A DNA stretch of 64,000 nt, from positions 1 through 64,000 of the forward strand of contig NIVC01003723.1 in NCBI GenBank assembly GCA_002269645.1, read 5' to 3'. The position numbers and the translations under genes are program-made. Shown one piece after another: positions 41,701 to 63,169 of the stretch; position 1 is the stretch's first letter, and every line of letters starts with the position of its first letter. Below the pieces are notes generated by a model. It had not been told where the DNA came from. It did not search any database and worked only from the letters and a program-made list of their open reading frames with translations. This stretch comes from Macrostomum lignano (Eukaryota).

Positions 41701-42477
41701 CTGGGAGGCTGGCCCAGCAACCGAGGATCTGGGAGTTCAGGAAGTTTCAGCCAGGAACTCAAAGACAGAAATTCTAACCACAAACTTTACATATCAAGCT
41801 CCAATACAACAGCTAGCAGTAAGAATGAGTATAATTGTCAGCCTCACCTGTTCATACCGGTGAATAACTTTCTGACTAACTGCGCCCAGCAGATACAACA
41901 AGTGGCCAATTAGCGTACTTTTACCGGCGTCCACGTGACCAATAATCACTAAATTAATCATGGCCCGGTCGCCCAAGCCAGCGCAATACCGTTTGTAGGC
42001 CTCCGCCGCCGAAGCTTCGGTCGAATCGCCGCCAGCAGAGTCAGGATCGGCGCCGTTTTTTCTAGGCGGCGCCGGGCTGGCGCTACGGGAGTTGCTGGCG
42101 CTATTAGCGGCCTGCTGCTGCTGCTGCTGCTGTTTAGTCGAGAGTAGCCGAGGCGAAGGCGAAGGGACGGATGGCGAGACGGCTACGGCGCCGGCAAAAC
42201 CAACTTTGACGCTGTGCGCCGGTCCAGCCGTAGCCACGTGAAGGCGCGCCATTTGTGGCGCCGGCGCCGATTGGGGTGGCTCCTCTTTGACGTCAGGCAG
42301 AGGAGGCTGGGTGATCCGGCCGCCCGTGTCCTTGTCCCGGACAAACAGGTAAGCGCTGGCGGTGGCCGGCGACACGCCGAAGGCCGGCTCGTCTTCGAAC
42401 GAGTGGCCGAACGATTCGTCTACGTCGTAGTCTTCGTCGTCGTTTAAAGCGATGTTTTTCACTCGACGACGGGACAT
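35718..42477 (-). CDS. HBS1L: HBS1-like translational GTPase (ribosome rescue, Pelota partner), about 617 aa, 4 exons
   Basis: Exons 42477-41848, 41366-40870, 40599-40164 and 36008-35718 in phase. HBS1 N-domain [17 protein letters not shown]...[11 protein letters not shown]; G1 [10 protein letters not shown]; [21 protein letters not shown]; DCPGHKDF; NKMD; C-terminal beta-barrel [16 protein letters not shown]. Confidence 0.95.
36405..38759 (+). mobile_element. Non-autonomous Helitron-like element (2.35 kb) nested in the 74-bp array
   Basis: 5' TCTAATATACTAAAG followed by (GTTT)n and AACGGAATGACCGATTT; 3' CCCCAACGGGG hairpin then TGCTAG|T. It joins exactly at unit boundaries with no TSD. Internally it has a 23-bp minisatellite (36870-37620) and degenerate 430-470 bp repeats. 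Confidence 0.65.
38474..38534 (+). repeat. Interstitial telomeric-type (TTAGGG)n, about 10 units
   Basis: TTAGGG TTAGG (TTAGGG)5 TAGGC TAGGG TTAGGG TTAG; a decayed copy lies at 38045-38095. Confidence 0.85.
41430..41735 (+). repeat. 28-bp minisatellite, HBS1L intron 1
   Basis: Unit GGCCCAGCAACTGAGGATCTGGGAGGCT. Confidence 0.92.
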
Positions 42478-42544
42478 GATGAGGCTGGCGAGGCTGAGGC
42501 TGGAAGCATGGAATAGAGCATAGTCGATGGGGTGGCTCAGAGAG

Positions 42545-42915
42545 ACTAAAAAACGGTAGGGAAAGATGAGACTAGAGTACAAAAGGGTGAGACTAGAGAA
42601 CAGGATGGTGAGACTAGAGAACACGATGGTGAGACTAGAGAACAGAAGGGTGAGACCAGAGTACAGGAGGGTGAGAACAGAGAACAGGACGGAGAGACTA
42701 GAGTATAGGAGGGTGAGACTAGAGTACAGGAGAGTGAGAACAGAGAACAGGAGAGTGAGACTAGAGAACAGGAGGGTGAGACTAGAGAACAGAAAGGTGA
42801 GACTAGAGAACAGAAAGGTGAGACTAGAGAACAGAAAGGTGAGACTAGAGAACAGAAAGGTGAGACTAGAGTACAGGAGGGTGATACTAGAGAACAGAAA
42901 GGTGAGACTAAAGAA
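42545..42915 (+). repeat. 21-bp purine-rich minisatellite upstream of the HBS1L ATG
   Basis: Unit GGTGAGACTAGAGAACAGRAR; pyrimidine-rich on the coding strand. Confidence 0.85.
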
Positions 42916-43144
42916 CAGGTGCGCAGGATTAAAAACACTACAAAGAGAACAATAACCAGAAATAAGATGAATATGCGCAACAGGCGCATTGGTTCCTGGA
43001 GTACTGAATCAAAGGTGGCATGACCCAGCCTAATAATACATTTTATTTGTCATTCACAATCGGTCGCTTTTGGGAGAAACAATGATCAGGGGTTTTCAAA
43101 GCTACTTATTATCGAGCCGTGCCAGAAAAGGTGGGATCATCGGA

Positions 43145-43345
43145 ATTAGACAGGGTTTCTAAGAATCGGTAGTTTATACCGAGTTTCTAAGAATCAGGAT
43201 TGGACAATGGCAGTTTCTAAGAATCGAGATTAGACAGGGTTTCTAAGAATCGGTAGTTTATACCCAGTTTCTAAGAATCAGGATAGGACAATGGCAGTTT
43301 CTAAGAATCGAGATTAGACAGGGTTTCTAAGAATTGGAATTAGAC
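43145..43345 (+). repeat. 84-bp tandem repeat built from TTTCTAAGAATC subunits
   Basis: Period about 84 bp (43153/43237). Confidence 0.75.
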
Positions 43346-43445
43346 CGAGACTTAATGTTTTGGATCGCGGGACTTCAAGATTTAGGACTATAAAGGAAAA
43401 GTATGTGGCATAACCAGTCGAACAAAAATGCCAGGAAAAGCTCAG

Positions 43446-46400
43446 TTAAGCTGCCTTCTTGGCCGACTTCCGTCTCAGCTTAGCGGGAGGCGGCGATTCA
43501 GATTCCTCGCTGCTGGCCACATCTTCCGGTTCGTCCACTTTGGCCGAGGCACTCGCCGCTTCCGGCTGTTCAGTTGGTTCGACATCACCATCCGACGAAG
43601 GCGGTAGCCAAACAATGCAACGGGTTGGCCGACAATTCGATTGCAAATCCAGACGGTGCAACAGGTTCAGAGTGCCGGCCTTCTGGTTCAGACTGGCCAG
43701 CACTATGCAGTTGGCGTCTCTGTAATTTAGTTATTATTATATAGATTTAGATTAGTAGCATTGATAATTCGATGATTTTCCTTGTATTGCTACTGTCAGT
43801 AGTTCAGTTTGGATATAATTAAGTTAAACTTTTTATACTTTTTAAAATACAGTATAAAACAGAGATTTCTTTGCTTTTTAGTAGCAAAACTGCAAAAGCC
43901 TAAATTTCAATTTTCACTAAATTAAAATGGTTCGCCTTTTTCGGTAGGTATCTATCTATATGGATTTAAAATTAGATTGAAAACCAATAGTCATTAAAGA
44001 AAAACAGATGAAAAGTTACTTTTAGCTTTTGAAATCCTAATTAGTTTAGTTTAAACTAAAACAGCTGCTTTTAGTTCCTAAAAACCTAAACAAAAACAGC
44101 TGTTTTAGTTCCTAAAAACCTAAACTAGAACAGCTACTTTGAGTTCATAAAAACCTAAACTAAAACAGCTACTTTATTAGTTCCTAAAAACCTAAACTAA
44201 AACAACTACTTTATTAGTTCCTAAAAACCTAAACTAGAACAGCTACTTTATTAGTTCCTAAAAACCTAAACTAGAACAGCTACTTTATTAGTTCCTAAAA
44301 ACCTAAACTAAAACAGCTACTTTTTTAGTTCCTAAAAAACTAAACTAAAACAACTACTTTATTAGTTCCTAAAAACCGTAACTAAAACAGCTACTTTTTT
44401 AGTTTCTAAAAACCGTAACTAAAACAGCTACTTTATTAGTTCCTAAAAACCTAAACTAAAACAGCTACTTTATTAGTTCCTAAAAACCTAAACTAAAACA
44501 ACTACTTTATTAGTTCCTAAAAACCTAAACTAGAACAGCTACTTTATTAGTTCCTAAAAACCTAAACTAAAACAGCTACTTTATTAGTTCCTAAAAACCT
44601 AAACTAAAACAGCTACTTTTTTAGTTCCTAAAAACCTAAACTAGAACAGCTACTTCATTAGTTCCTAAAAACCTAAACTAAAACAGCTACTTTATTAGTT
44701 CCTAAAAACCTAAACTAAAACAGCTACTTTATTAGTTCCTAAAAACCTAAACTAAAACAGCTACTTTATTAGTTCCTAAAAACCTAAACTAGAACAGCTA
44801 CTTTATTAGTTCCTAAAAACCTAAACTAAAACAGCTACTTTATTAGTTCCTAAAAACCTAAACTAAAACAGCTACTTTTTTAGTTCCTAAAAACCTAAAC
44901 TAGAACAGCTACTTCATTAGTTCCTAAAAACCTAAACTAAAACAGCTACTTTATTAGTTCCTAAAAACCTAAACTAAAACAACTACTTTATTAGTTCCTA
45001 AAAACCTAAACTAAAACAGCTGCTTTTAGTTCCTAAAAACCTAAACAAAAACAGCTGTTTTAGTTCATAAAAACCTAAACTAGAACAGCTACTTTATTAG
45101 TTCCTAAAAACCTAAACTAAAACAGCTACTTTATTAGTTCCTAAAAACCTAAACTAAAACAGCTACTTTTTTAGTTCCTAAAAACCTAAACTAAAACAGC
45201 TACTTTATTAGTTCCTAAAAAACTAAACTAAAACAACTACTTTATTAGTTCATAAAAACCTAAACTAAAACAGCTACTTTTTTACTTCCTAAAAACCTAA
45301 ACTAAAACAACTACTTTATTAGTTCCTAAAAACCTAAACTAAAAAAGCTACTTTATTAGTTCCTAAAAACCTAAACTAAAACAGCTACTTTTTTACTTCC
45401 TAAAAACCTAAACTAAAACAACTACTTTATTAGTTCCTAAAAACCTAAACTAAAAAAGCTACTTTATTAGTTCCTAAAAACCTAAACTAAAACAGCTACT
45501 TTATTAGTTCCTAAAAACCTAAACTAAAACAGCTACTTTTTAGCTCCTAAAAACCTTAACTAAAACATCTACTTTTAGTCCCTAGTTTTTAATTTTTAGG
45601 TACTAGAAAACCAAAACCGAAACTGGCAGCTAGCTTTGCCAGATATGCAAAAAAACACTTTAAAAATTTCTTCCCCATCATTAAACCTACCTGCCAGTAC
45701 ACACGGCAGCAAGCATTTGCCGGTTTTTCTGACCTTGACCAGCTGCGTCCAACCAAGCGGTCGCGTCCTTGACTCGACCGACCGCCTCCTTGAGCAGGTT
45801 GCCGTCAGCAATGCATTCTCCGCTAGTAGCTCTTAAGCAATTCAGCACACCGTCTGAGCGACCAACAAGCATCGCGGTTTTACACTTAAACGAAGGCCAA
45901 TCATCTGATGATAAAAATGAATCGTTGCTAATCCTAGCACAGGTGACGGCAACTCCAACAGAGCTGCTGATTTTATTGATTTCCCAGCTGTGTTGGCACT
46001 CGCAGGTGTCGATGTTGTGCCAGTCAATTGAGTCGCTGTACACCAGAGCGAACACAGTTGAACTGCACCATAGAATTGAGTCCGGCTGACGCTTCAGCTT
46101 CAGGGCGTAGCTGAGGGGTTGAGCATGATATTGTACAGTGAGCTGCTGTTTGCTATGACAAGTTGCTGTGGCATTGAGCTTCTCAGGGGCTGCTACCCCT
46201 TCTCTACCCCAGGGTTTCTCAAGTATGGCTGCTACCCCCTCCTCTACCCCCAGGGTTTCTCAATTATGGCTGCTACCCCCTTCTCTACCCCCAGGGTTTC
46301 TCAATTATGGCTGCTACCCCTCCTCTACCCCCAGGGTTTCTCAATTATGGCTGCTACCCCTTCTCTACCCCCAGGGTTTCTCAATTATGGCTGCTACCCC

Positions 46401-49400
46401 TCCTCTACCCCCAGGGTTTCTCAATTATGGCTGCTACCCCTCCTCTACCCCCAGGGTTTCTCAATTATGGCTGCTACCCCTCCTCTACCCCCAGGGTTTC
46501 TCAATTATGGCTGCTACCCCCTCCTCTACCCCAGGGTTTCTCAATTATGGCTGCTACCCCTCCTCTACCCCCAGGGTTTCTCAATTATGGCTGCTACCCC
46601 TCCTCTACCCAGGGTTTCTCAATTATGGCTGCTACCCCTCCTCTACCCCAGGGTTTCTCAATTATGGCTGCTACCCCTCCTCTACCCCAGGGTTTCTCAA
46701 TTATGGCTGCTACCCCTTCTCTACCCCAGGGTTTCTCAAGTATGGCTGCTACCCCTCCTCTACCCCAGGGTTTCTCAATTATGGCTGCTACCCCTTCTCT
46801 ACCCCAGGGTTTCTCAATTATGGCTGCTACCCCTCCTCTACCCCAGGGTTTCTCAATTATGGCTGCTACCCCTCCTCTACCCCAGGGTTTCTCAATTATG
46901 GCTGCTACCCCTCCTCTACCCCCAGGGTTTCTCAATTATGGCTGCTACCCCTCCTCTACCCCAGGGTTTCTCAATTATGGCTGCTACCCCTCCTCTACCC
47001 CAGGGTTTCTCAATTATGGCTGCTACCCCTTCTCTACCCCAGGGTTTCTCAATTATGGCTGCTACCCCTTCTCTACCCCAGGGTTTCTCAAGTATGGCTG
47101 CTACCCCTCCTCTACCCCAGGGTTTCTCAATTATGGCTGCTACCCCTCCTCTACCCCAGGGTTTCTCAAGTATGGCTGCTACCCCTTCTCTACCCCCAGG
47201 GTTTCTCAATTATGGCTGCTACCCCTCCTCTACCCCAGGGTTTCTCAATTATGGCTGCTACCCCCTCCTCTACCCCCAGGGTTTTTCAATTATGGCTGCT
47301 ACCCCCTTCTCTACCCCCAGGGTTTCTCAATTATGGCTGCTACCCCTCCTCTACCCCAGGGTTTCTCAATTATGGCTGCTACCCCTCCTCTACCCCCAGG
47401 GTTTCTCAATTATGGCTGCTACCCTCTTCTCTACCCCCAGGGTTTCTCAATTATGGCTGCTACCCCTCCTCTACCCCCAGGGTTTCTCAATTATGGCTGC
47501 TACCCCCTTCTCTACCCCCAGGGTTTCTCAATTATGGCTGCTACCCCTTCTCTACCCCAGGGTTTCTCAATTATGGCTGCTACCCCTTCTCTACCCCAGG
47601 GTTTCTCAATTATGGCTGCTACCCCTCCTCTACCCCAGGGTTTCTCAATTATGGCTGCTACCCCCTTCTCTACCCCAGGGTTTCTCAATTATGGCTGCTA
47701 CCCCTTCTCTACCCCAGGGTTTCTCAATTATGGCTGCTACCCCCTTCTCTACCCCAGGGTTTCTCAATTATGGCTGCTACCCCTCCTCTACCCCCAGGGT
47801 TCCTCAATTGTGGCTGCTACCCCCTCCTCTACCCCCAGGGTTCCTCAATTATGACTGCTACCCCCTCCTCTACCCCCAGGGTTCCTCAATTATGGCTGCT
47901 ACCCCCTCCTCTACCCCCAGGGTTCCTCAATTATGGCTGCTACCCCCTCCTCTACCCCCAGGGTTTTTCAATTGAATGAATGAGTGATTTTAATAAACGT
48001 GTCATACTCTATTGTTTTACATTTCCAATATAAACCTACATGTAATAAAAGTGTTTTCTATAGAATGAAGAACACATGCCAGATAAAACGAATGAATTTT
48101 AACCCAGGGTCATCAAGCTTGCGATAAACAGGAGAGCCAAGAAGATCAGAGCCCATTAGAACAGTTACAAGCTGTGTAAACATAGATAGAAAAACCCATG
48201 TTATAGAATATAGCTAGCTACTATCCGAAATGCACCTGTTTATAAATTTCTGCATCAAATTAAGATTAAACAAACTGCAAGTTCCAGTGCTAAAAAAATG
48301 TTTACTTTTAATATATAGCAAACCCAATGTCAGACCCTAGCGTCAATTTACTTTAAACTATAGAAATCTATTTTCTCACTCAACTTATCCACTAGATTCT
48401 TAGAACAGATCAAGAGCGTTTCTTAGAACAGGTCAAGGACGATTTTTAGAACAGGTCAAAGGCGAATCTTAGAACAGGTCAAGGATGATTCTTAGAACAG
48501 GTCAAGAGCGTTTCTTAGAACAGGTCAAGGACGATTTTTAGAACAGGTCAAAGGCGAATCTTAGAACAGGTCAAGGATGATTCTTAGAACAGGTCAATGA
48601 CGATTCTTAGAACAGGTCAATGACGATTCTTAGAACAGGTCAAAGGCGATTCTTAGAACAGGTCAAGGGCGAATCATAGAACAGGTCAAGGGCGATTATT
48701 AGAACAGGTCAAGGGCGATTCTTAGAACAGGTCAAAGGCGATTCTTAGAACAGGTCAAAGGCGATTCTTAGAACAGGTCAAAGGCGATTCTTAGAACAGG
48801 TCAAGGGCGATTCTTAGAACAGGTAAAAGGCGATTCTTAGAACAGGTCAAGGGCGATTATTAGAACAGGTCAAGGGCGATTCTTAGAACAGGTCAAAAGA
48901 ATTTGAACAGAATAACAAACCAAACAAGCCGGCACTCACGCCTGCCTTCCTCGTATGAGATTCCAGGCTCGCAGGGTGCAATCGTCCCCAATAGACAGAG
49001 CCAGCCGACCCGACTGGTGCACTCCCAGAGATCTGACGCCCTCCTTATGCCGACGCATTGTCCGAAGGCACTCCCAGCCGCGGCAAGACCAAATCGCTAA
49101 GCTCTTATCGCTGCTGCAGCTTAGCAGATGAGAATCGCCAAAGAATGCCAGATCCGTAACTCCGCCTTCGTGCTGCATCAACTGGCCCAGCTTGCGCAGG
49201 CTAGACAGATTGTACAGACTAATCTGTTCGTCTCGAGAGCCGCTGGCTAGCCGACCATTGGGAGACACAGCTAAGCAAGCTATCGCCTTCAGGTGCGCCG
49301 ACGCCTCGGTGAATAGAGGCCGAAGTGTACGCGAAAGCGACGAAGATTGATCAGACGGAGTGTCTGCTGACAGATTGCTGACTGAGTAACCGGCAAGGCC

Positions 49401-49436
49401 ACCCTCTAGGGTGCCGACCACCAGGACTGGGGCGGA
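43446..49436 (-). CDS. PAK1IP1: PAK1-interacting protein 1 / Mak11-like WD40 60S biogenesis factor, about 397 aa, 3 exons
   Basis: Exons 49436-48940, 46110-45691 and 43719-43446 in phase (2, 2). N-terminal VLVVGTLEG; WD40 repeats (LASGSRDEQISLYNL, HEGGVTDLAF, LSIGDDCTLRAWNLIRGRQAY); terminal RPTRCIVW then a basic tail KLRRKSAKKAA*. No in-frame ATG at the expected start (see findings). Confidence 0.85.
44040..45580 (+). repeat. 37-bp AT-rich minisatellite, PAK1IP1 intron 2
   Basis: Unit TTAGTTCCTAAAAACCTAAACTAAAACAGCTACTTTA. Confidence 0.93.
46190..47970 (+). repeat. 39-41 bp minisatellite, PAK1IP1 intron 1
   Basis: Unit CCCCAGGGTTTCTCAATTATGGCTGCTACCCCTCCTCTA; stop-free in all three + frames, giving false 515-618 aa ORFs. 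Confidence 0.95.
48400..48900 (+). repeat. 23-bp minisatellite, PAK1IP1 intron 1
   Basis: Unit TTCTTAGAACAGGTCAAAGGCGA. Confidence 0.9.
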
Positions 49437-49519
49437 CTTGTCACGTGACAGCAATTTTAGGAGCAATAAAATTAGTTTAATGGGAGATAATGCACTGCTG
49501 GATAAGGAGATTGACTTAG

Positions 49520-49680
49520 GAACAATTTTTTGAGAACACTATGCCATTCTGAGACTGTTTTGAGAACAATATTTCATTCTGAGACTGTTTTTGAGAACAA
49601 TATTTCATTCTGAGACTGTTTTTGAGAACACTATTCTATTCTGAGACTGTTTTTGAGAACACTATTCCATTCTGAGACTC
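49520..49680 (+). repeat. 31-bp minisatellite upstream of PAK1IP1
   Basis: Unit TGAGAACAMTATTYCATTCTGAGACTGTTTT. Confidence 0.8.
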
Positions 49681-50389
49681 AAGTGAATAAATAAACAGTA
49701 AAATAATAACAAACGCAGAACACGTTAATGAATGCCAAAACAGCTAGTAACTAAGGGATCATTATGCATATTTTGTATTTGTATAAATATTATTGGTAGA
49801 ATTAATGAAAAAAACTTGATTGCACCTCAATAAGCTACTACAGACTACTAATAATGTCTCAATATCAATAGAATACCAATAGAATAAGTGTAATATATAA
49901 TAAACATAAGGCTATAAATTCTAAGCAAAAAAACTCGAATGATTCCAATCGAATGTTTGGCGTAAAGAATACTAAAAAAGATTGTTTTATGAAAATATAT
50001 AAAATTGTCGATATATTGTTGAAAAAAAACTTGTCTGCAAAAAATCTAGAGGCACTACTTGTAACCTAATGGAGTATATAATGAAGATTGGTAATGCGTA
50101 CTGATCAAAGAGAACTACAATACCTATTGCACTCAATATCATAAAATTTATTGTAAACTGGAGATTCGTTGTTGCATATAAAAAAGGGATTGAAAACGTC
50201 TAGCAATGGCTAAAACTGCCAATAAATCACCATAAAATAGATGCGAGCCTATTCAATAATAGTATTGATATATATATGTGTATATAGTATGCACTGAATT
50301 GCTATGGCTATAAATATTATGTTGGATATACGATGGGCAGCCTTCACCAGACAGATGATTTGACAAATTGAATAGACAAACTGGAATAG

Positions 50390-50532
50390 GAGACAGAGAC
50401 AGACAGACAGAGACAGAGTCAGACAGACAGAGAGACAGACAGACAGTCAGACAGAGAGACAGACAGACAGACAGACAGAGAGACAGACAGACAGACAGAC
50501 AGACAGTCAGACAGACAGACAGACAGACAGTC

Positions 50533-50563
<31 letters not shown>

Positions 50564-50620
50564 GAGACAGACAGACAGACAGACAGACAGTCAGACAGAG
50601 AGACAGACAGACAGACAGAC

Positions 50621-50657
<37 letters not shown>

Positions 50658-50730
50658 GTCAGACAGACAGACAGTCAGACAGTCAGACAGACAGACAGAC
50701 AGTCAGACAGTCAGACAGACAGACAGACAA
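50390..50730 (+). repeat. (GACA)n microsatellite 3' of QDPR
   Basis: Long AGAC run beginning about 90 nt after the QDPR stop on the coding strand. Confidence 0.95.
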
Positions 50731-50815
50731 TCCAGAGCAGCTAACAGATATAGATAGTCAAAGCTCCCCATATGTCCATACTACTGTTAGTAGCAGCTGA
50801 CACGAAGCCCGCAGT

Positions 50816-52452
50816 CTAAGCCGGCAGCACTTCAGTCTTGAAGTCCTTAGTAACCAGGATGAGCAGGCTGCCGGACTGCGGCACGTCGGCGGCCCCGCTG
50901 ACCCAGTTGGCAAGCAGGTCGGCCACAAAGCTCAGCGGAGTCCACTCGCTGAGGCCGGCCTCGCCCATGGCCCGCCTGTTAGCCGGGGTGTCCAGCGTGA
51001 CGGGCAGGATAGCCAGGGCGCGGGCGCCACTGGGTAGGCCCGAGTTTTTCTCGGCAAGTGAGCGAACCTGAGGTAAAAATAGGCGAGGTTTGATACAAAA
51101 TGTGAATAAGAACACATTGAATCAATCGGAAAGATGAGATAAAGGTTGCGGATTGAAGAGAAGGAATCCGATCAAGAGAAGAAAATGAAGGGATTAAATG
51201 AAGGTCATGAAGCGATCCGATGAAAGGAATGAAGGGATCAGATGAATGGAATTAAGGGATCAGGTGAAGGGAATTAAGGGATCAGGTGAAGGGAATTAAG
51301 GGATCAGATGAATGAATGGAATGAAGGGATCAGATGAATGGAATTAAGGGATCAGATGAAGGGAATGAAGGGATCAGATGAATGAATGGAATGAAGGGAT
51401 CAGATGAATGAAATTAAGGGATCAGGTGAAGGGAATGAAGGGATCAGGTGAAGAGAATTAAGGGATCAGGTGAATGAAGGGAATGAAGGGATCAGATGAA
51501 GGGAATGAAGGGATCAGGTGAAGGGAATGAAGGGATCAGATGAAGGGAATGAAGGGATCAGATGAAGGGAATGAAGGGATCAGATGAATGAATGGAATGA
51601 AGGGATCAGGTGAAGGGAATGAAGGGATCAGATGAATGAATGGATCAAATGAAGGGAATGAAGGGATCAGATGAATGAATGGAATGAAGGGATCAGATGA
51701 ATGAATGGAATGAAGGGATCAGATGAAGGAAATAAAGGGATCGAATGGCAGGAAAGGAATAAAGGGATCGAATGGCAGGAAAGGAATAAAGGGATCGAAT
51801 GGCAGGAAAGGAATAAAGGGATCGAATGGCAGGAAAGGAATAAAGGGATCGAATGGCAGGAAAGGAATAAAGGAATCTGATGAAAGGTCATAAGGGATAA
51901 AGGGCACAAGTGGAATGAAGGGACTGGACTGAAATACTAAAAATGCAGTTGGCACACAGACAGACGAGGGCCGCTCACCAGATGATGCACGGCAGCCTTG
52001 GCCATGCCGTAGCCGATCATGCCGGGCGTCGGTCCCAACGCCGGCTGGGCGCCGGTGAGCAGCAGCAGAGAGTCCTTGGAGTCCAGCAGGTGCTTGGCGG
52101 CCAGAGAAGCGGCAATAACGCTAGTCCAGACCGACTGCTTCAGCACCAAGTCGCAGTTGGCGACGAAATTGTCGCTGCCGGCGTCTCCGCCGGCCCAGCC
52201 GCCGGCAACGCAGATCACGGCGTCGAGTTTAGCGCCGTCCAACACTTTGGCAACGTCGGTGACTACGGCGGCGTGTTGATCGGTTAGACTGCCGCTAGAA
52301 GGCGACACGGCTACGCTAGCATCGGCGTCGGGATTGTCAGCGCCGATGTCTACGCTGCACACCCAGCAGCCCAGCTGTTTGAATTTCATTACGCAGGCTG
52401 AGCCAAGGGCGCCGCGACCGCCGTACACGAGGATTCGTTTGGTTGAGGACAT
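50816..52452 (-). CDS. QDPR: Quinoid dihydropteridine reductase (SDR family), 241 aa, 2 exons
   Basis: Exons 52452-51979 and 51067-50816. Motifs YGGRGALG (Rossmann fold), DAVICVAGGWAGG, LKQSVWTS, TPGMIGYGMAKAAVHHL (YxxxK) and PVTLDTPANR are characteristic of DHPR. Confidence 0.96.
51170..51880 (+). repeat. Purine-rich minisatellites in the QDPR intron
   Basis: GAAGGGAATGAAGGGATCAGAT-type units followed by a 27-bp AAAGGGATCGAATGGCAGGAAAGGAAT unit. Confidence 0.88.
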
Positions 52453-52554
52453 GTTGCTTTTGGTTTGCTTGAATTGGGGGGAATCGCTGCTGTTAGTGCC
52501 GCCAATGCACTGCAATTAGGTTGATTGTAGGACTGTCACTGCCACCCATCATCA

Positions 52555-53400
52555 GTGTCACTCGCCTATCAGTCTGACACACTTACTCAGTGTCACTCCT
52601 CACTCACTCTGCCACCCCCACTCAGTGTCACTCCTCACTCACTCTGCCACCCCCACTCAGTGTCACTCCTACTCAGTGTCACTCCCACTCAGTGTCACTC
52701 CTCACTCACTCTGCCACCCCACTCAGTGTCACTCCTCACTCACTCTGTCACCCCCACTCAGTGTCACTCCTCACTCACTCTGCCACCCCCACTCAGTGTC
52801 ACTCCTCACTCACTCTGTCACTCCTACTCAGTGTCACTCCTCACTCACTCTGCCACCCCCACTCAGTGTCACTCCTCACTCACTCTGTCACCCCCACTCA
52901 GTGTCACTCCTCACTCACTCTGCCACCCCACTCAGTGTCACTCCTCACTCACTCTGCCACCCCTACTCAGTGTCACTCCTCACTCAGTCTGCCCCCCCCA
53001 CTCAGTGTCACTCCTCACTCACTCTGCCACCCCACTCAGTGTCACTCCTCACTCACTCTGCCCCCCCACTCAGTGTCACTCCTCACTCACTCTGCCACCC
53101 CTATTCAGTGTCACTCCTCACTCACTCTGCCCCCCCCACTCAGTGTCACTCCTCACTCACTCTGCCACCCCTATTCAGTGTCACTCCTCACTCACTCTGT
53201 CACTCCTACTCAGTGTCACTCCTCACTCACTCTGTCACTCCCACTCAGTGTCACTTCTCACTTACCCTGTCACTCCCACTCAGTGTCACTCCTCACTTGC
53301 CCTGTCACTCCTCACTCACTCTGTCACTCCTCACTTGCCCTGTAACTCCCACTCAGTGTCACTCCTCATTCACTCTGGTCACCCCTCACACACTCACTCT
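52555..53400 (+). repeat. About 35-bp CA/CT-rich minisatellite upstream of QDPR
   Basis: Unit CACTCAGTGTCACTCCTCACTCACTCTGCCACCCC. Confidence 0.9.
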
Positions 53401-54099
53401 GTCCGGTAAAAACTAGAAGAAATGATAAAAGTCAACGCATTCGACACGATTAAAATAGATAATGCAATTAGCCATATATATATATAATAATTAATGTATT
53501 ACCTGCAGATGAGTGGTCACAAATCAGACAATAAAAAATCTATATTACGCGCATTTCAGATTCATATCTACTATAGTGGACAACAGCTAACACGAAGGCG
53601 CATTGTTTAAATGTTAGCGCTAGAAGTTACTATTAAAACGAAAGTTGAAATCAGTAAAAATGATTGGAATTATAATTTTTAAACGAAATAAACGGTACAA
53701 TTGTTCAGCATGGCCATCTAGCAGACACAGCAGCACTAGCGAAATTTATTTTAATAATAATTATGCCTAAGTCGGGAACAAACCAATACAACTTCAAGGC
53801 GGACAACAGACAGAATAAAATATTCCAGAACTATAATGAGATAGTACTAAGGTGTCGGTTCATACTACTGGCACACTGGTGCAAAGTTACGCGCATATAA
53901 TTATAATTTAAACAATCATAATTGCAATTAAAAATTAAATTGAAATTCTACACTAAAATGGACAACCGGACAAATTGGATAGACCTGGCGAAAGGACACC
54001 TTTCTATGCACACGAAATCCTAGTGTAACCTCATCGCAACTGAAAGCACATTATAACAGGAATGGTGCACATTTATTAAAGCGCGCGGGGCCAGTGTAC

Positions 54100-54400
54100 A
54101 TTCGAGTGAGAGATTGGGGTGAGAGAGTCGCGTAGGGCTAGTCGGGAATAATGTACATCGGAGTGAGAGAGTGGGTGGGGGCTAGTCGGGATCAATGTAC
54201 ATTAGGGTGGGAGAGTGGGGCTGGTCGGGATCAATGTACATTGGGGTAAGAGAGTGGGGGCTGGTCGGGATCAATGTACATTGGGGTAAGAGAGTGGGGG
54301 CTGGTCGGGATCAATGTGCATTTGGGTAAGAGTGGGAGCTAGTAATGAGTAATGTACATTGGGGTGAACAATGAAAAATAGTCTGGGGACTAGTCGGTAA
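54100..54400 (+). repeat. About 39-bp degenerate tandem repeat
   Basis: Unit GGGCTGGTCGGGATCAATGTACATTGGGGTAAGAGAGT. Confidence 0.75.
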
Positions 54401-55681
54401 CAAAGTACATTAGCTGTACACTGGGAGAAATTAGAGTAAATTTGGTTTTTCGATGATTATTCATCACACGTGTTCACATAATGATGGATAACAGAAGAAT
54501 CTAAATAGTATTGCACGCTTGAAATATTTTTATAACTTGTGACACACACTCGCATACAATAGGGGCATATTTTCGTACACATAGATAAGTTCCTATACCT
54601 GTTTATAAAATATTGAAGTATGTAACGATAAAAAAGAAATCAAAAGGAAGGTAATTATGGAAGTTAAAAAACATCTATAGGTGAGATGATCGGATCATCT
54701 TTGTTTAAATTGTTTCAAGTTAATTTTGTTTGTTCGATTTAGTTGTAAATCTATAAATATACTAAATTTCATGCTATAAATTATTACCAGTAGACACATA
54801 ATGATTTTTGTAACCAAGGTAATTACTACTTGACTACCAATCACAGAAGCCGTTACATCAGTGAGTGATTCTTCACAACACATAAATGACCGGACAAAAA
54901 CACACCTTCTCTTCCTTGCTTGAGTCCGTCAACTCAGGGAGAATAAAAGCGCCAAAAAATGACTAATTACAAGGATCTTAAAATACAAGCAAAGTTTTTT
55001 AAATCAAATACTTTGACGTTTAATATTGGTCGGTCGGTCAGGTCAGCTTAGACACAAATCTATGGAATGAAGGAGAACAATCTGTAAGAACGATAGTGTA
55101 AGTTCACTCGACTGAAGCTACATGCATGCGCGTGAGTGCACCTGATAGTTAAAAAGCGGCTTTCCCGACTACTCCATCAATCAATTTCAAGCAAAAAGGA
55201 CACCTTTGACATTCAAAATATAACTGACAATATAGAAATTTATAATATTAATAATAATAAAATATTCGACGATCTGTGGACACTCGCGTCCCTTGATGAA
55301 TCAGAGTCGCATCTCTAGCAAAAGTTCAGCGCCAACACAACGATTCTTGGACGACTCTTTCGCGACTCTGTAACCATTCTGCACCTCACATGACGCATTT
55401 GTGATGCAAGTCGCCTCTCCGTCACATTGGATTCTTGTATTCTTGTAAAGGTATCGTTTTTAACGGGTGTGCCCTGGAGGTTAGTCAGACGCGTTTACCA
55501 ACTGAGCTGCTCTGCCAATGCACTCGTGGCATTATCCATTCAATCAACAGTAGCATCCAACGACATAGGCGCTAACAAAAAAAAGCAAAATAAAAAACAT
55601 AAATCAAGCCTACAACAATTAATCAGTAGGTGAATTTCACAAGAAATTAAAAACAAACAAGCATTGGCTGACAAAATGGAA

Positions 55682-58600
55682 TTAAAGCTTGTAGAATGTC
55701 TCCTCAACGTCATTGGCGGAGACTAATTGCTTTGATCGAACCACCAGTTCGGGATTTGCCAGAGCATCAGCCGGTGAGCAGTCGGCTAAGCCGGGATCAG
55801 CCACAGTTGTCAGGGTAGGAGCGCCAGAGCCGTGCTGGCGCCTGGCCTGCTGGCTGTGCAGGTAGCGAGCCGTACGCCTGGCAGGCATGCAGCTGTAGGC
55901 AGCCTGGGTGTCTTCCTCTGATAGGCTGCGGCGTGGGGTGGGGACTCTTGCGTGAGGCTCAAGCTACTCTAACTGAGGATCTGAGAGGCTGGCCCAGCGA
56001 CTGAGGATCTCGGAAGCAACTGAGGATCTGGGAGGGTCACCAAGCAACTGAGGATCTGGAGGGTCGCCAAGCAACTGAGGATCTGGGAGGGTTGCCAAGC
56101 AACTGAGGATCTGGAGGGTTGCCAAGCAACTGAGGATCTGGGAGGGTTGCCAAGCAACTGAGGATCTGGGAGGGTCGCCAAGCAACTGAGGATCTGGAGG
56201 GTTGCCAAGCAACTGAGGATCTGGGAGGGTTGCCAAGCAACTGAGGATCTGGAGGGTTGCCAAGCAACTGAGGATCTGGAGGGTTGCCAAGCAACTGAGG
56301 ATCTGGAGGGTTGCCAAGCAACTGAGGATCTGGAGGGTTGCCAAGCAACTGAGGATCTGGAGGGTTGCCAAGCAACTGAGGATCTGGAGGGTCGCCAAGC
56401 AACTGAGGATCTGGGAGGGTTGCCAAGCAACTGAGGATCTGGAGGGTTGCCAAGCAACTGAGGATCTGGAGGGTTGCCAAGCAACTGAGGATCTGGAGGG
56501 TTGCCAAGCAACTGAGGATCTGGGAGGCTGGCCCAGCAACTGAGGATCTGGAGGGTTGCCAAGCAACTGAGGATCTGGGAGGCTGGCCCAGCAACTGAGG
56601 ATCTGGGAGGCTGGCCAAGCAACTGAGGACCCCATCAAAGCTCTCATTAGTTTAACATTAGATAAAACAAGAAATCAATGTTGAAAGTAAAACCGACCAG
56701 CCCTACCTGCTCTCATTCTCCAATTTTTCAACGTTAGTCTTTAACTGCATAAATTTGAGATCAAATTTTCTCAAAAATTCGTTAGAATCCATCTCGCTAA
56801 AATCTCTGTCGCTAGCAAAAGTTTTCGACCTGGTGACGGATGAAGAAGAAGCCGATTTCATCGAGTGGTTTGGCTTAGCCGAACTGTTAGCAGCCGCAGC
56901 AGGCTGAGCAGGTGCCTCATCATCGGCCACAAACTGCTCAAAGCTGACTTCCGCCTCAACCACAGTCGAGGGCGGAGTCGGGTTCCTAGAGGAAGTGCCC
57001 GAGGCGGAACCGCTGCGACTGCCAGCTGCCGGCCCAGAAAGCTCGGGCACTTTGATGCTGGACTTCAACTGTAGACCATCGTTGCTCCACAAGCCGTTGA
57101 GTCTTTTCAGCTCTTCCACCTGAGTGGAAAATTAAGGTCATTGAGTTAGGCAGGCAACTAACAGCCAGAAAGGAGACAAATTAGGAAGTAAAATTCAGGG
57201 GCTGGCCATAGAGGCACACAGATATGCAAGAAAGTATAGATGTAATTGCGATTAATGTTCTGTACCAAAGGTCGACAAACGTTTTTATAAGGGCCAGATA
57301 AAGAATATACTTCATGGTCGCTGGTCAGATGAGAGTGGAAAGGAGAGAGAATGGATGAGAAATGAGAGAGAGAAGAGAGGGGGAGAGGTGAACCTTTGTG
57401 TAGGCCAGAGTTTCAAGTAGGCCAGATTACTATTGTGAAGTTTTAAAAGACCCAAGGGCCAAATAAAGAGGGGTTTTGTAGGCCTGGCCACATATAGCCT
57501 GCAGGCCAGACTTTGCCAACCCTTGTTCTATACAAATCATTTTGAATGTTAAGCTATTTAACATTGATAATGTATAAACAGAAAGGATATTTCCATTGCT
57601 AAAACTAAATACAAAAGTATAAAAATATAACTATAATTTAAACTTCTTACAATTTGAAACTTAAAGTTTTATGAACCATATCTTATTAATGTTTTATATA
57701 TTATAATAATAATGCCTCAACTTTAACTTTTGTTTGGCATTATAAATTTGGATCCCAGATGCGAATTCTAGCTAGATACTTTTTATTTCAATATACAATA
57801 TCCATATTTTTAATTCATATATTATCCAAAGTAATAAACTTTAAAAAATTGGGATTGCAAGAATTCTATCAGCTATCAAATTTGAAGCACCTATCTATAT
57901 AAGCCTAGAGCCTATATAAGCCTTAGTGCATTAAAAATATTGAATATATGTTCTAAAATTACTCATTTTATTTTATGTTTCCTAGAAAGCATTATTTCAA
58001 ATCTGCACTAAAAAATTATTTGTTTAAATGCTATGAACCACAAAAATATTTTTGTGACCAATCTTAGTTATAAACAGTAAAGAATTTTTGTATAAATAGA
58101 AGCCTAGAACAGGCCAAAAAATAATTATCTACAAGCTAGCAAATTCACTTAGCAAACTAATATAATTGTTCCATATTAAAATTGCTAATTGCAGTATTCA
58201 AGAGACTTATTCATTTCTTTAGAGTATCAAGTCCTATATTGGGAGTTTTGAAAACAATTGAAAGCAAGTATCGCCTAAGAGCAATAATTACTATAGAGTA
58301 GCAAAATTGCCTTACCTTTAAGGCAGGAGAAACTGCCTCAGGGCAGTGAAATTGCTTAGAAGCTGTAACCCTTTGATCCTGGGAATATCCAAGGCTGAGA
58401 GAAAACTACTGTAGGAGCCATACATGCCTAACACCCATCCAAACCAGATGGGTAAAATGGCCACTGGCCAAGGTAAGTTGTAAAATCAAAAATGTGAAAA
58501 ATGAAAAATTTGGAGAAGAAAGGAGAAAAGGAAAAGGAAAAAGGAAGAAGAGAGAAAAGGAAAGAGGAGAGAGAAAAAGAAAGAAGAAAAGAGAAAAAGG

Positions 58601-61600
58601 CAAGAAAAGTCATATAAAAAATAAAAATTAGGTTGTAATTGGGAGAAACTAAGTTGCAAATCTAGACAAAACTAAGTCACACCAGACAGGTGAAATAGGT
58701 CCTAGTCATTTTGTCAACTGGCGTTTTGTCAACTGGCCATTTTGTCAACTTGGTTTTATCACTGGTCGTTTCGTCAACTAGCCAATGAAGCAATTTCAAA
58801 CCTCAGTCACTTTATCAACTGGCCAACAAGAAGTGTTCCAACATTGTTCACTTCGTCAACTGCCAATAAACTATCCCCCGCAGCCACAAAAAGGTAAAAC
58901 TGAACCCTGAAATGACTAAGTCAACAGGCTAATTAATATTCATACCCTTCTGCAACATCTGCCAGCTTTCGATCAATGCGTCTCTGTTATATGCTTGTAC
59001 ATGTACTAACAAAATATAATGCCCTCATGTGTTTGAAACGTGTGCAGCACAACGGGGTTGACATCCCGTGTTACACATTTGTATATATTAAATTTTGAAT
59101 GCAGAAGTAATAAAGAAGTAGTACATGTAGTTGAGGAGTAACTGGACCAAAGATAATGCTGAAAGTAGCCGGGTCCTCTATTCGCAAAACATACATATAG
59201 AAAGCATTCCAAATCAAGCCATTACATACATGAATGTGTTCATGTATGAGGGAAGAGGGAGAAAATGTGTTCATGTATGACTGTGCAGCAGGTCACTTGG
59301 ACAGAACAGGTTGGCGTGGTGATATAAAAGCTGCATTGGTCACTCCTGTAGGCGATCTTAACTTGAAGGTGGCGTGCAGCAGGCCAGCATGCACTGCATC
59401 AACTTGTTGCTCAAGCAACTTCATCAGCATCCAGGTCTTGACAGTGTATAGCAAGATGGTCTCAATCACCGCCTTGCCTGGAACAATGCTGTCCTCTAGC
59501 GGTCAGCTATACATTAAGCTGGCCTCGGAACGCAGGACTCCCCTAGACTACATGTAAATATATTGTAATTCAAGCCAGTAGTGTCGGAACATATTTCAGA
59601 GTAGGTGGGGGCTCTTGATGGGAGGGCACATTGCATATAATTTCTTCTAATCTAAGGGCACCCAAACTTCTGCTGTTATATGAGTTTGTAGCAATATGAC
59701 ATAACAAGGCCAATATTCAATTCTGTGTTGGGGTAGCCAAAAGTCTAGCTGAAAATGCTTAAATTTTCAACTAATTCAAACATTGTGCAACTGTACTGCA
59801 CTCATTTCAAGGACTGCACTTAAGTGACTTCAGTGGTCCTTGACTAATTTATTTAGTATATAGTCATAGATTTCTCAAATGAATGAAAATTGCAAGGGCA
59901 AGACCAGTAATTTTCTGGATCTCTTGGCGCTGTCTCTATTCTTTTAGCTTTTATATCTTTCCTCTCATCTTCCTTTTTTTCTCCATTTTCTTTTCCCTTC
60001 CTTTCTCTCTTGATCCTCTCCTTTCCTCTCTCTTCTATTTTGTCTCTCCTCTCCTCTTGATCTATCCTCTCCTATTTCATCTCTCCTCTCAATTGTATAC
60101 TCTCTTATCCTTATTCCTTCGCCTCTCCTTTCTTCTACAAATATGCCAGCTTGTATTTTTCTTCTCCATTCCCTATCCTCTCTCCCTCCTTTGGCTTGCA
60201 ATCATCAGGGACTCCTGGGTGCATTTTGCTTAGGGGCCTAGCGAAGCAGACCTAGAAGGGCAGTCATTGCGCTAGGTTTTCAATCTGGCCCTTAAGGTAA
60301 AAAGTTTGTTGATCCTACATGTAAAACCACTAGGCTTAGGCATATGGCCAAGTCTTATGCAGCTACATGAGCAGGAATGCACGAATCAAAAGCACACCAC
60401 TGTGGTATTGCACCCAATATCGCCAATCGGTTTGCCCATCTGCCTATGCCTTTGCATCTGTCTACTTGTGTCTGCTTGTGCCTTCTTACAGTGCACTATA
60501 CATTTTAGTGTTAAGCATGACAAGGAGTGAAATACCTTATACGTGTACGGCATGATCGATTGATGAGCGTGTGTGAATTGTACAAATTATATACTCTGAT
60601 TAAAAGCATTATTGGATATCAAGATTCACTGTAGGGGCTTTGGCTGACTATGCACAACGGGGTGGAAGGGTGGGAAGGTGCACGTAGTCTACTAATTTTT
60701 GCGACTCCATATATAGAGGACTTCATAGCAGTCTTCGATGCGTTTTGATAGGAGAAATACCCATGTTTTGTAGTCGCATGTATGGTTGCATAACACAAAT
60801 ACTCAAGATTCATTAATGCTTGGATGTATATGGGTATGAGTGCGCATAGGGTGACGCATTTGCATAGAATATTTGCATCAAAACATTTTACCTAATGGAC
60901 ATGCAGTCTGGTATTGCAAAATTGTAAAATTTGTTTGTTTTTTTAAATAAGGCAATTAATAAAACAAGTCATCGATATAACAATAATTGTAAGCTATACA
61001 AGATATGCAGCTAAATCAGCTACATATATATATCATTCAAATAATCAAAATCTTAGTTACTTTATCAATAAGCAAATGGGAAAGACCTAGGCATTAGTCA
61101 CTTCATCAATATACATGCGCAACTGCTGGCCAACCTGGCCAATCTGGCCACCGTAAATTGTGGTGGACCAGAGGTAAGTCGCAAAAATGCTACCCCAAAA
61201 AATATGGACATAGTACTAATTAGATTCCAAGGCATTTAGGCCTGATAAGACAGTTATAGTTACTCCTGCCATTTACTTGTTAATTTTGCTTTAGGTTTTC
61301 TTCACAGGTAAGTTGCATTTTTGGTCAAAAAGTAAGTCGCATGGCCAGTGTAAATCAGGGGGGTTGCGCATGTATGCTTCATCAACTACCAGTAAAGTTG
61401 CCCCAATACTTTGGTCACTTTGTCAACTGAGTTGACAAAATGCCAGTTGATGAAATGACCATCACCTAGTGAAATTACACATTAACCAATAAAAATATAT
61501 AAACAAAGTACATTTATATGCTACCAATAAAAGTTAAGTAACAGCAATAAGATCATCTCAGAGGGAAGAAGAAGCCCTTAGCCCTGTAACATCTTAACGG

Positions 61601-61981
61601 TATCAGTGTGATCATTAGGCCTAAAGACAAAAGTTTAGCCCTTTGAGTTTGACAATTATTTAAAATAGATTAGTAAGTATTTATTATATAACTTACAAAA
61701 AATGCTCATGCCTAGGTTTCAAGTTCTTACTCTTAGGCCCTTAAGCATATTCCATATAATGCTGGCAAGCACTAAAAAAAGCAACAAAAAGAACTTACTG
61801 TTGTTTCATATTTAATTGCTAAAGACACAAGAGTGTCACTAGGTCTAACTTTGTGGAGTCTTGTCTTCTGAGATGTTGTTGAAGCACTTTTTGATGTTGC
61901 ACCATATGTTCGAATTTTCTTAACTGTATTTTTTGGGACAGTTGATCCAGAAGTAAACAATATATCTTTTTCATCAGCCAT
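55682..61981 (-). CDS. LysM-domain protein (LYSMD1/2-like), 3 exons
   Basis: Exons 61981-61799, 57119-56707 and about 55963-55682. The LysM domain HKVRPSDTLVSLAIKYETT|VEELKRLNGLWSNDGLQLKSSIKVP is split by intron 1; IRTYGAT upstream, SNEFLRKFD, and C-terminal VEETFYKL* resemble LYSMD1/2. The phase of the last junction is ambiguous. Confidence 0.85.
55970..56630 (+). repeat. 27-28 bp minisatellite, LysM-gene intron 2
   Basis: Unit GCCAAGCAACTGAGGATCTGG(G)AGGGTT; same family as HBS1L intron 1. Confidence 0.92.
57266..57525 (+). mobile_element. hAT-type MITE (MER58/Charlie-like), 260 bp
   Basis: Termini CAAAGGTCGACAAAC...CTTTGCCAACCCTTG resemble CAGGGGTCGGCAAAC TIRs; 8-bp TSD TTCTGTAC/TTCTATAC (1 mismatch). 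Confidence 0.75.
58697..61467. mobile_element. Non-autonomous TIR DNA element (about 2.8 kb) in LysM-gene intron 1
   Basis: Inverted repeats GTCATTTTGTCAACTGGCGTTTTGTCAACT (left) and AGTTGACAAAATGCCAGTTGATGAAATGAC (right); multiple subterminal TGTCAAC motifs; 8-bp TSD GGTGAAAT/AGTGAAAT. Confidence 0.65.
59250..59560 (-). mobile_element. RTE-clade LINE C-terminal fragment
   Basis: Minus frame KAVIETILLYTVKTWMLMKLLEQQVDAVHAGLLHATF...GVTNAAF resembles the RTE post-RT region (xVESILLYGxETW...LDGxxxxLLR...TN). Confidence 0.65.
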
Positions 61982-63169
61982 TTCTAAATCTAAACATCAC
62001 ATTGACAAAGGCAAAATATGATAATTGAATAGGCCTACACTGCAAGGTTTAACTTTAAAGATGAAATTCAATTATTTTTTGAAATAGTTAAACTTTAGTT
62101 TTAAGTCTTTAACAAGTCTTGTCACCGCTTTTCAATTTTTACAACCAAGACTTTCTTCAAATTCAATCTGGCCGAGTCCTAAATTTTATTTATCCTTAGA
62201 AACTGCATTTTAATTTTTTTGAAAGAATTTTTGGGAAATTTACTAGAGACTGATTAGTTTTTAAGAAGAGGGACGCAATATGTTCAGCGTGATCGAAAAA
62301 TGCAAGATTTAGGACAGCCACTGGAGAGGAGATGAGTGCTCTATTCTATCTCTAAGTGAATTCAATTTACATTAGGCCTAGCTAATTTCAGAGTAAAATT
62401 TTACACCATCCGTTTTTTCTGAATTTGTACACTTCAAGCTTAGGCTGCTTAGATTACTATGAAAACGAGAACAGACAGATTGACTGTGGTGTTAGCCGTT
62501 AGGTAAGGTACCATATTTATTTAATTAGATATCATGATGATAAACCAAGCGATTTAAAATCAGCTAACAAAATGGGTTTCTGCTAAAAAGACATTTAAAC
62601 AACATATCAACATTTTCGCGAGTTAAGTAGCATAAATGATAAAAATGGTTTACTTAGGCAGGCAAATTACTTTAAATATTTTATTCAAATTATTGTCGCT
62701 TTTTTGAGTAATTTACAATAGCTTGCTTTACTTTTTTAACAGCAGTTTGTTGAAGTACTTCGTTCTATTTACTATTTAAGGATATCCCGAGCGATATTCG
62801 AGATGGATATAAGTAAATAGCAAAAATCTGCTTTTAAAGCACTAAAAAACAGGAATTTTACAGAAAAAATAATTAACTAATGAGATTTTCCAGGTATAAA
62901 CAACCTTAAAATTGAGCTTGGCGCTTATGATTGAAATGATTTTGTATATTGTAATTCTCATAAAGCTGATGTTTCTTTATCTCGACAGTTTTAGGTTGAT
63001 ATTCGATTTTGAGTTCTATCACTTGCTCTCTGTCGCTAAAATTTTAAATTGAAAATCTTTACATACAACAAGAATAATACAACAAGAAAATAAAGTGATA
63101 TCAATTAAAGTTCGTTTTGTTACTTTATTCCATCCAATATAGTTTCATCAAATATATTGGCCATCCCTA

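Follow-up and report, generated by a model that had tools for sequence, protein, structure and literature searches.

In flatworms, the terminal AUG of the spliced leader (SL) can serve as the initiator methionine codon of the mRNA that receives it, and more than 40 Schistosoma mansoni cDNAs require this AUG according to Cheng et al. 2006 (J Biol Chem 281:733), as that work is reported in later articles (PMC9851317, PMC12582326, PMC5832876, PMC7653826). The mechanism has thus been established for flatworms for two decades, and what is new here is only the gene and a species-level example, along with a clear instance of how such genes come to be labelled 'partial' or merged into chimeras. We analysed a stretch of 64,000 nucleotides from Macrostomum lignano, a flatworm with a free-living habit; we call this stretch the window (contig NIVC01003723.1 of GCA_002269645.1, assembly Mlig_3_7; the DNA is identical to the record and window coordinates equal record coordinates). 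Its minus strand carries an orthologue of PAK1IP1 whose conserved N-terminus is preceded by no genomic ATG. With a probability of roughly 0.8, the initiator AUG of this gene is supplied by the SL RNA.

The locus resembles the S. mansoni SL-AUG mRNAs in that AUG forms the end of the SL and shares its frame with a conserved open reading frame (ORF), and in that the recipient gene is without its own initiator. It differs from them in that M. lignano is a free-living macrostomorph with a different, 35-nt SL, and the PAK1IP1 case is known here from the genome and its annotation alone. To our knowledge, PAK1IP1 is not among the SL-AUG cases described so far. The slORFs found with slORFfinder (PMC9851317) are likewise ORFs that exist only after the SL is attached, and they have stop codon and frame in common with the main ORF; those cases were called from SL-containing reads and ribosome footprints, whereas ours was called from genome and annotation. 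As with the downstream genes of metazoan operons (C. elegans; M. lignano, PMC8629364), the gene lies in a same-strand cluster whose spacers are short once repeats are subtracted and whose members have transcriptional-unit names in common, and its annotated 5' end coincides with a proposed acceptor site. Unlike C. elegans, M. lignano has a single SL and no SL2-type specialisation, and here the SL would also supply the Met codon. The worm protein has the predicted WD40 propeller and the basic C-terminal tail of PAK1IP1 and yeast Mak11, a WD40 factor of 60S biogenesis, and differs from them by two insertions (about 205-216 and 237-245), an N-terminus longer by 3 residues and a shorter tail.

The PAK1IP1 gene and its 5' end

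Direct reading of the minus strand gave a three-exon PAK1IP1 orthologue at 49436..43446 with GT..AG introns, as follows (a slash marks a splice boundary here and below).

48940..49436, minus strand: exon 1, starting at codon 2 (TCC, Ser), with no ATG before codon 87 and donor GC/gtgagt
45691..46110, minus strand: exon 2, acceptor cccctcag/C and donor AG/gtaggt
43446..43719, minus strand: exon 3, including the TAA stop at 43448-43446

The spliced model comprises 396 amino acids, or 397 with a donated Met. By exact-sequence look-up the model without Met is GenBank PAA50074.1, 'hypothetical protein BOX15_Mlig006864g4, partial [Macrostomum lignano]'; the start of exon 1 is identical to the start of that protein, and the GenBank coding sequence (CDS) is 5'-partial and starts exactly at 49436. 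A frameshift near the C-terminus had been considered when two overlapping frames resembled the human protein, and it was dropped once the correct phase of exons 2 and 3 removed the problem.

The identity of the gene was examined with a human PAK1IP1 guide sequence, which a search showed to be 100% identical to a database protein whose relatives carry the name p21-activated protein kinase-interacting protein 1. In BLASTP, residues 5-388 of the worm protein aligned collinearly and over the full length with residues 3-352 of human PAK1IP1 (29% identity, E 3e-40), and identity to the proteins of that name was 29-31% (E 3e-40). In the multiple alignment the worm sequence M-SAPV-LVVGTLEGGLAGY lies over the mammalian ME-LVAGCYEQVLFGF, and the invariant columns are L6, G9, E12, L15, G17 ... 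W344, L345. A Pfam WD40 match (2.3e-21) was obtained. The AlphaFold2 model is all-beta (pTM 0.74) with confident strands at residues 5-10 and 15-21 (pLDDT 82-89), and its top Foldseek matches are seven-bladed WD40 propellers, those in the PDB being generic propellers. The conserved, structured part is thus predicted to begin four residues after the proposed Met, and a start at Met87 would remove about seven of the modelled beta-strands. A role of the worm protein in ribosome biogenesis would follow from orthology. Three other searches were less informative. A word-indexed protein search with exon 1 gave no matches, because a three-gene fusion model places the M. lignano proteins in a cluster represented by HBS1L. 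In the exhaustive HMMER search with the full protein the best 150 matches were all giant multi-WD40 proteins, from which no orthologue N-termini were obtained. The PDB sequence search returned only generic or designed WD40 proteins and no human PAK1IP1 chain at E < 1e-40.

The 5' sequence on the minus strand reads ...ctaattttattgctcctaaaattgctgtcacgtgacAAG/TCC GCC CCA GTC CTG GTG GTC GGC..., where AAG occupies 49439-49437 and TCC 49436-49434, so that the AG at 49438-49437 ends on a codon boundary, in phase 0. Upstream, the PAK1IP1 frame stays open for 34 codons to the TAG at 49541-49539, and none of the 34 is ATG. No ATG occurs in any of the three frames from 49544 to 49259: the nearest one upstream is at 49547 (ATG GCA TAG), the nearest downstream is at 49258 and out of frame (ATG GTC GGC TAG), and the PAK1IP1 frame itself has none before codon 87 (49178). 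A preliminary description of the window had named the gene PAK1IP1, reported the lack of ATG in every frame from about 49498 to the conserved N-terminus and a phase-0 AG directly before codon 2 at 49436, and expected a normal length of about 397 residues with an SL-derived Met. Each of these statements holds: the first by the collinear full-length alignment with human PAK1IP1, the others by the minus-strand reading and the length of the spliced model. It had also assumed a flatworm, and the exact-sequence look-up bears this out with M. lignano.

The ATG-free run by itself was dropped as statistical evidence. It measures 286 nt, and 38% of this minisatellite-rich window lies in ATG-free gaps of at least that length; shuffling gave p ~0.02 for mononucleotides and p ~0.19 for codon order. 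A phase-0 NAG codon near an N-terminus is not rare either. The missing ATG is significant because it coincides with the conserved N-terminus and with the annotated 5' end of the mRNA.

The annotated end comes from a genome-guided transcriptome for which SL-containing reads were trimmed and mapped and ORFs were called with TransDecoder; the program TBONE splits transcriptional units into genes at trans-splicing peaks and poly(A) sites (PMC5730564). In this annotation, genes named.g1,.g2 and so on share one transcriptional unit. Other 5'-partial proteins in it, e.g. HBS1L, extend upstream of the true Met to the end of the transcript. The first residue of a partial CDS thus locates the annotated 5' end of the mRNA with an error of no more than two bases.

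The spliced leader and the proposed acceptor

The SL of M. lignano is 35 nt long, CGGTCTCTTACTGCGAAGACTCAATTTATTGCATG, and ends in ATG, with GTAAG following in the SL RNA gene (PMC8629364); its 3' part is ...CAATTTATTGCATG. The general claim that flatworm spliced leaders end in AUG is thereby confirmed for this species. Trans-splicing affects 30-39% of M. lignano genes (PMC8629364, PMC5730564), and workers on other Macrostomum species regard the final ATG of the SL as probably a translation start (PMC10468722). The elements near the proposed junction are listed below.

49437..49438, minus strand: AG of the proposed SL trans-splice acceptor, gtgacaAG/TCC, phase 0, with the annotated CDS and mRNA 5' end at 49436
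49439..49541, minus strand: presumed end of the outron, with the frame open to the TAG at 49541 and near-cognate CTG at 49451 and TTG at 49454 and 49466
49475-49471 and 49470-49460, minus strand: branch-point-like CTAAT and T-rich tract TTTATTGCTCC, read from the sequence, function putative
49495..49499, minus strand: alternative acceptors ccAG/cAG, which read tcTAGcAG in the other two copies of the locus
49515..49516, minus strand: the one further phase-0 AG that the open upstream frame holds, cctaAG/TCA, with a pyrimidine run before it

The AG at 49438-49437 is the first AG downstream of CTAAT and the T-rich tract. The U-rich tract of the preliminary description is thus present, although only modest, and the acceptor-like sequence that it placed near 49498 was recovered as ccttatccAG/cAG at 49499-49498 and 49496-49495. 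When the SL was joined in silico at 49438-49437, the junction would read ATG/TCCGCCCCAGTC, and the result is an in-frame MSAPVLVVG..., translating MSAPVLVVGTLEGG.... When it was joined at the 49498 site, the product was ATG CAG TGC ATT ATC TCC CAT TAA, i.e. MQCIISH and a stop, a 7-codon dead-end ORF.

We propose that dihydropteridine reductase (DHPR), PAK1IP1 and HBS1L would be transcribed, at least partly, as a polycistronic precursor with PAK1IP1 as the middle gene. SL trans-splicing would resolve this precursor and join the 35-nt SL to the AG at 49438-49437, so that the mature mRNA would read ...UUGC AUG UCC GCC CCA GUC... and translation would begin at the last three SL bases and yield 397 aa, M-SAPVLVVGTLEGG.... 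Because the gene itself offers no usable AUG, full-length protein would depend on trans-splicing at the phase-0 site. We infer both that SL reads join at the AG at 49438-49437 and that ribosomes start at the SL AUG.

Chromosomes are duplicated in the M. lignano DV1 line, and on different contigs the assembly contains the gene cluster twice more (loci L001 and L002). All three copies read gtgacAAG/TCC and all are annotated as 5'-partial; the proteins of L001 and L002 begin with 'KSAPVLVIG', and these loci likewise are without a genomic ATG for the conserved N-terminus. The SL AUG is also in frame with the AAG start annotated for these two copies. Both annotated starts, TCC and AAG, are therefore in phase with the SL AUG, and 49438-49437 is the only canonical AG in reach. 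Over codons 1-86 of the three copies, four of six substitution events are synonymous and one is V/I, which suggests, weakly but consistently, that this segment is translated. In the 100 nt upstream of the CDS there are five differing sites with no coding-like substitution pattern. In the roughly 6 kb upstream of the CDS start, the core GTTCTCA[A/G]AA of a 31-nt repeat was counted 5 times in the window, 31 times at L002 and 110 times at L001.

As a separate observation, the third PAK1IP1 copy (L002 6001-8621, PAA66625.1, 208 aa) loses its reading frame near the beginning of exon 2 (...KRQPD/LQFNCVRSG...) and ends at a premature stop. It is either a decaying duplicate or the product of an assembly indel.

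Weighing the origin of the start codon

The donated start codon put forward in the preliminary description is supported by the phase-0 AG, the SL ending in ATG, the annotated 5' end at 49436, the agreement of the three copies and the alignment of the N-terminus, and further by the modelled N-terminal strands, the mostly synonymous changes in codons 1-86 and the operon-like spacing of the cluster. Several points weigh against it. No read or cDNA carrying the SL-exon junction was retrieved, and the junction is inferred, not observed. The gacAAG acceptor differs from [T/C]TNCAG, the motif enriched at M. lignano trans-splice sites (PMC8629364); two cis introns of the neighbouring HBS1L use AAG acceptors. 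At L001 and L002 the models take the AAG itself as their first codon, where 'ac' instead of AG comes before it although the surrounding sequence is identical, and other genes of the cluster also have annotated 5' ends without a preceding AG; the annotated ends are inexact, and therefore the boundary carries an uncertainty of about +/-3 nt. An additional consensus ttgCAG, in phase 0, lies 12 nt upstream in L001, where the window has ttgCTG. An SL joined there would give M-SRDK-SAPV, and the trans-splice site used may thus differ between copies. Finally, the Kozak context of the SL AUG would be weak, with U at both -3 and +4, and ribosomes that scanned past it would meet the 3-codon out-of-frame ORF at 49258 and then Met87.

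Further searches returned nothing: an Rfam scan and an SL search with up to 3 mismatches found no SL RNA gene in the window; exact look-up of Met-initiated and alternative-start variants found no transcript-derived protein with the SL Met in the collection searched; metagenome contigs, as expected, held no SL-exon junction with a gap of 0-15 nt; and article full texts and supplements gave nothing for Mlig006864, Mlig010388 or PAK1IP1.

A stronger form of the proposal holds that PAK1IP1 expression is gated by the choice of trans-splice site, such that protein would come from the weak phase-0 AAG acceptor alone. The acceptors 60 nt upstream, which look stronger, would lead to the 7-codon dead-end ORF and then to 236 nt without AUG, and site choice or trans-splicing activity could tune the supply of a 60S-biogenesis factor, e.g. 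in neoblasts. Trans-spliced genes have been reported to be over-represented in neoblasts. The arrangement is kept in all three homeologous copies, and we hold such gating to be unlikely.

If the SL does not provide the codon, an unseen cis-spliced upstream exon with an in-frame ATG might be joined to the same or a nearby AG. Acceptors are often common to cis- and trans-splicing in parasitic flatworms (PMC12582326), an ATG/GTGATT is present at about 50233, and UniProt A0A1I8JGJ5 (1225 aa, 'Dihydropteridine reductase') splices a DHPR exon onto ...SRDKSAPV. That entry, however, is a chimera fusing DHPR, PAK1IP1 and HBS1L, and its acceptor is not AG in the window copy (ttgCTG/tca); the RNA-seq-based gene models place an upstream PAK1IP1 exon in none of the three copies and flag all of them as 5'-partial. 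Moreover, the orthologues start only 3 residues ahead of the worm's conserved strand, and therefore an extra coding exon is not needed. We give such an exon a small chance. A near-cognate start (CUG at 49451, UUG at 49454 or 49466) on an mRNA with its 5' end further upstream, un-trans-spliced or trans-spliced at 49498, would use the open frame of 34 codons with its CTG and TTG codons, and orthologue N-termini tolerate a few extra residues. Yet these codons lie outside the annotated mature mRNA, the CTG reads CAG in L001, the 100 nt upstream lack a coding-like pattern with five differences only, and an SL at 49498 would place an out-of-frame AUG and the 7-codon ORF ahead of them, so that this start is very unlikely.

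There is equally little to be expected of the two remaining in-frame starts. Met87 (49178) has in its favour that it is the first in-frame genomic ATG, but the truncated protein would lack the seven predicted beta-strands conserved with human PAK1IP1, and codons 1-86, which it would leave untranslated, evolve mostly synonymously. The phase-0 AG at 49516-49515, with its pyrimidine run, would after SL joining give a protein longer by 27 residues; this hydrophobic extension (LILLLLKLL) has no orthologue counterpart and lies outside all annotated transcripts. As for a sequencing or assembly error, with ATG as the true codon at 49439-49437, AAG and ATG are one base apart, and in the DHPR 5' region the copies do differ by AAG versus ATG. 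This alternative, raised in the preliminary description, did not survive the comparison: for practical purposes it is excluded because all three independently assembled copies read gtgacAAGtcc, and K is the first residue in two of their GenBank translations.

With a donated start codon, a free-living, early-branching flatworm would contribute a conserved housekeeping gene to a phenomenon described chiefly from parasites. Mechanistic understanding stays as it was, and the value of the case is mainly practical. M. lignano is a widely used regeneration model, and such genes are deposited as 'partial' or fused to their neighbours, which skews proteomes, orthology tables and BUSCO-type scores. Many M. 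lignano gene models could be completed by the rule that, in a flatworm with trans-splicing, a 5'-partial CDS starting in phase 0 immediately behind an AG is to be taken as the SL-AUG followed by the ORF. In transgene design, a PAK1IP1 genomic fragment would go untranslated unless it carried the outron and acceptor or an added ATG.

The gene cluster and its surroundings

DHPR, PAK1IP1 and HBS1L are arranged head to tail on one strand (42475-52500, minus; also at loci L001 and L002). The features that bear on this arrangement are as follows.

50816..52500, minus strand: DHPR (QDPR; BOX15_Mlig006864g3), the upstream same-strand gene
42475..42504, minus strand: start of HBS1L, the downstream same-strand gene, with a partial CDS from 42504 and a genomic ATG at 42477-42475
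49527..49679, minus strand: the 31-nt tandem repeat (cagtctcagaatggaatagtgttctcaaaaa), 5 copies, lying between DHPR and PAK1IP1 and directly upstream of the proposed acceptor
49481-49476, minus strand: ATTAAA, about 40 nt upstream of the proposed trans-splice acceptor, poly(A) role putative
50147..50152, minus strand: AATAAA, by its sequence a candidate poly(A) signal of the upstream gene and an alternative to ATTAAA

From the DHPR stop (50816) to 49436 there are 1379 nt, which after subtraction of 333 and 153 nt of tandem repeats become about 890 nt; the 941 nt between the PAK1IP1 stop (43446) and the start of HBS1L (42504) shrink to about 400 nt without 543 nt of repeats. M. lignano operons have been defined as same-strand neighbours with a repeat-adjusted spacer below 1 kb (Ustyantsev & Berezikov 2021, PMC8629364), and both spacers are under this value. 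Should ATTAAA serve the upstream gene as its poly(A) signal, a mere 20 nt or so would separate the two cistrons. DHPR and PAK1IP1 share a transcriptional-unit name (Mlig006864g3 and Mlig006864g4), as do PAK1IP1 and HBS1L at a second locus (Mlig010388g1 and g2). The three genes thus probably form an operon, and the annotation boundary together with the shared unit names suggests that PAK1IP1, as a downstream gene, may be trans-spliced. No gene is annotated on either strand at 52501-62500, the 10 kb upstream of DHPR, and therefore DHPR would be the promoter-proximal gene of the cluster.

The 5' ends of both neighbours vary between copies. At HBS1L, L001 reads ttcccAG/ct (11116-11130) where the window reads ttccATG/ct (42504-42515), i.e. 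the acceptor AG has been lost and an out-of-frame ATG created in the window, yet the model starts at the same place. The start of the L001 model, two bases behind ttcccAG, is consistent with an exact trans-splice site; an SL joined there would have its AUG out of frame, opening a 16-codon upstream ORF that runs across the real ATG of HBS1L. At the 5' end of DHPR, L002 has aattcATG/CAAGCC (1895-1925) where the window has aattcAAG/CAAACC (about 52470). With the L002 ATG the protein would gain six residues in frame, and the start of the annotated CDS immediately follows this ATG; a genomic suffix resembling the SL may have been trimmed here as SL, giving a false trans-splice call.

The window as a whole (1-64000) is rich in minisatellites with units of 15-45 nt, 53 rows of the TRF output having a score of at least 200. 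Among them is one 5-kb array of a 22-mer in 232 copies, and examples of arrays are found at 27937-32959, 44052-45575 and 46188-47973. Both PAK1IP1 introns consist largely of arrays with 37- and 39-nt units.

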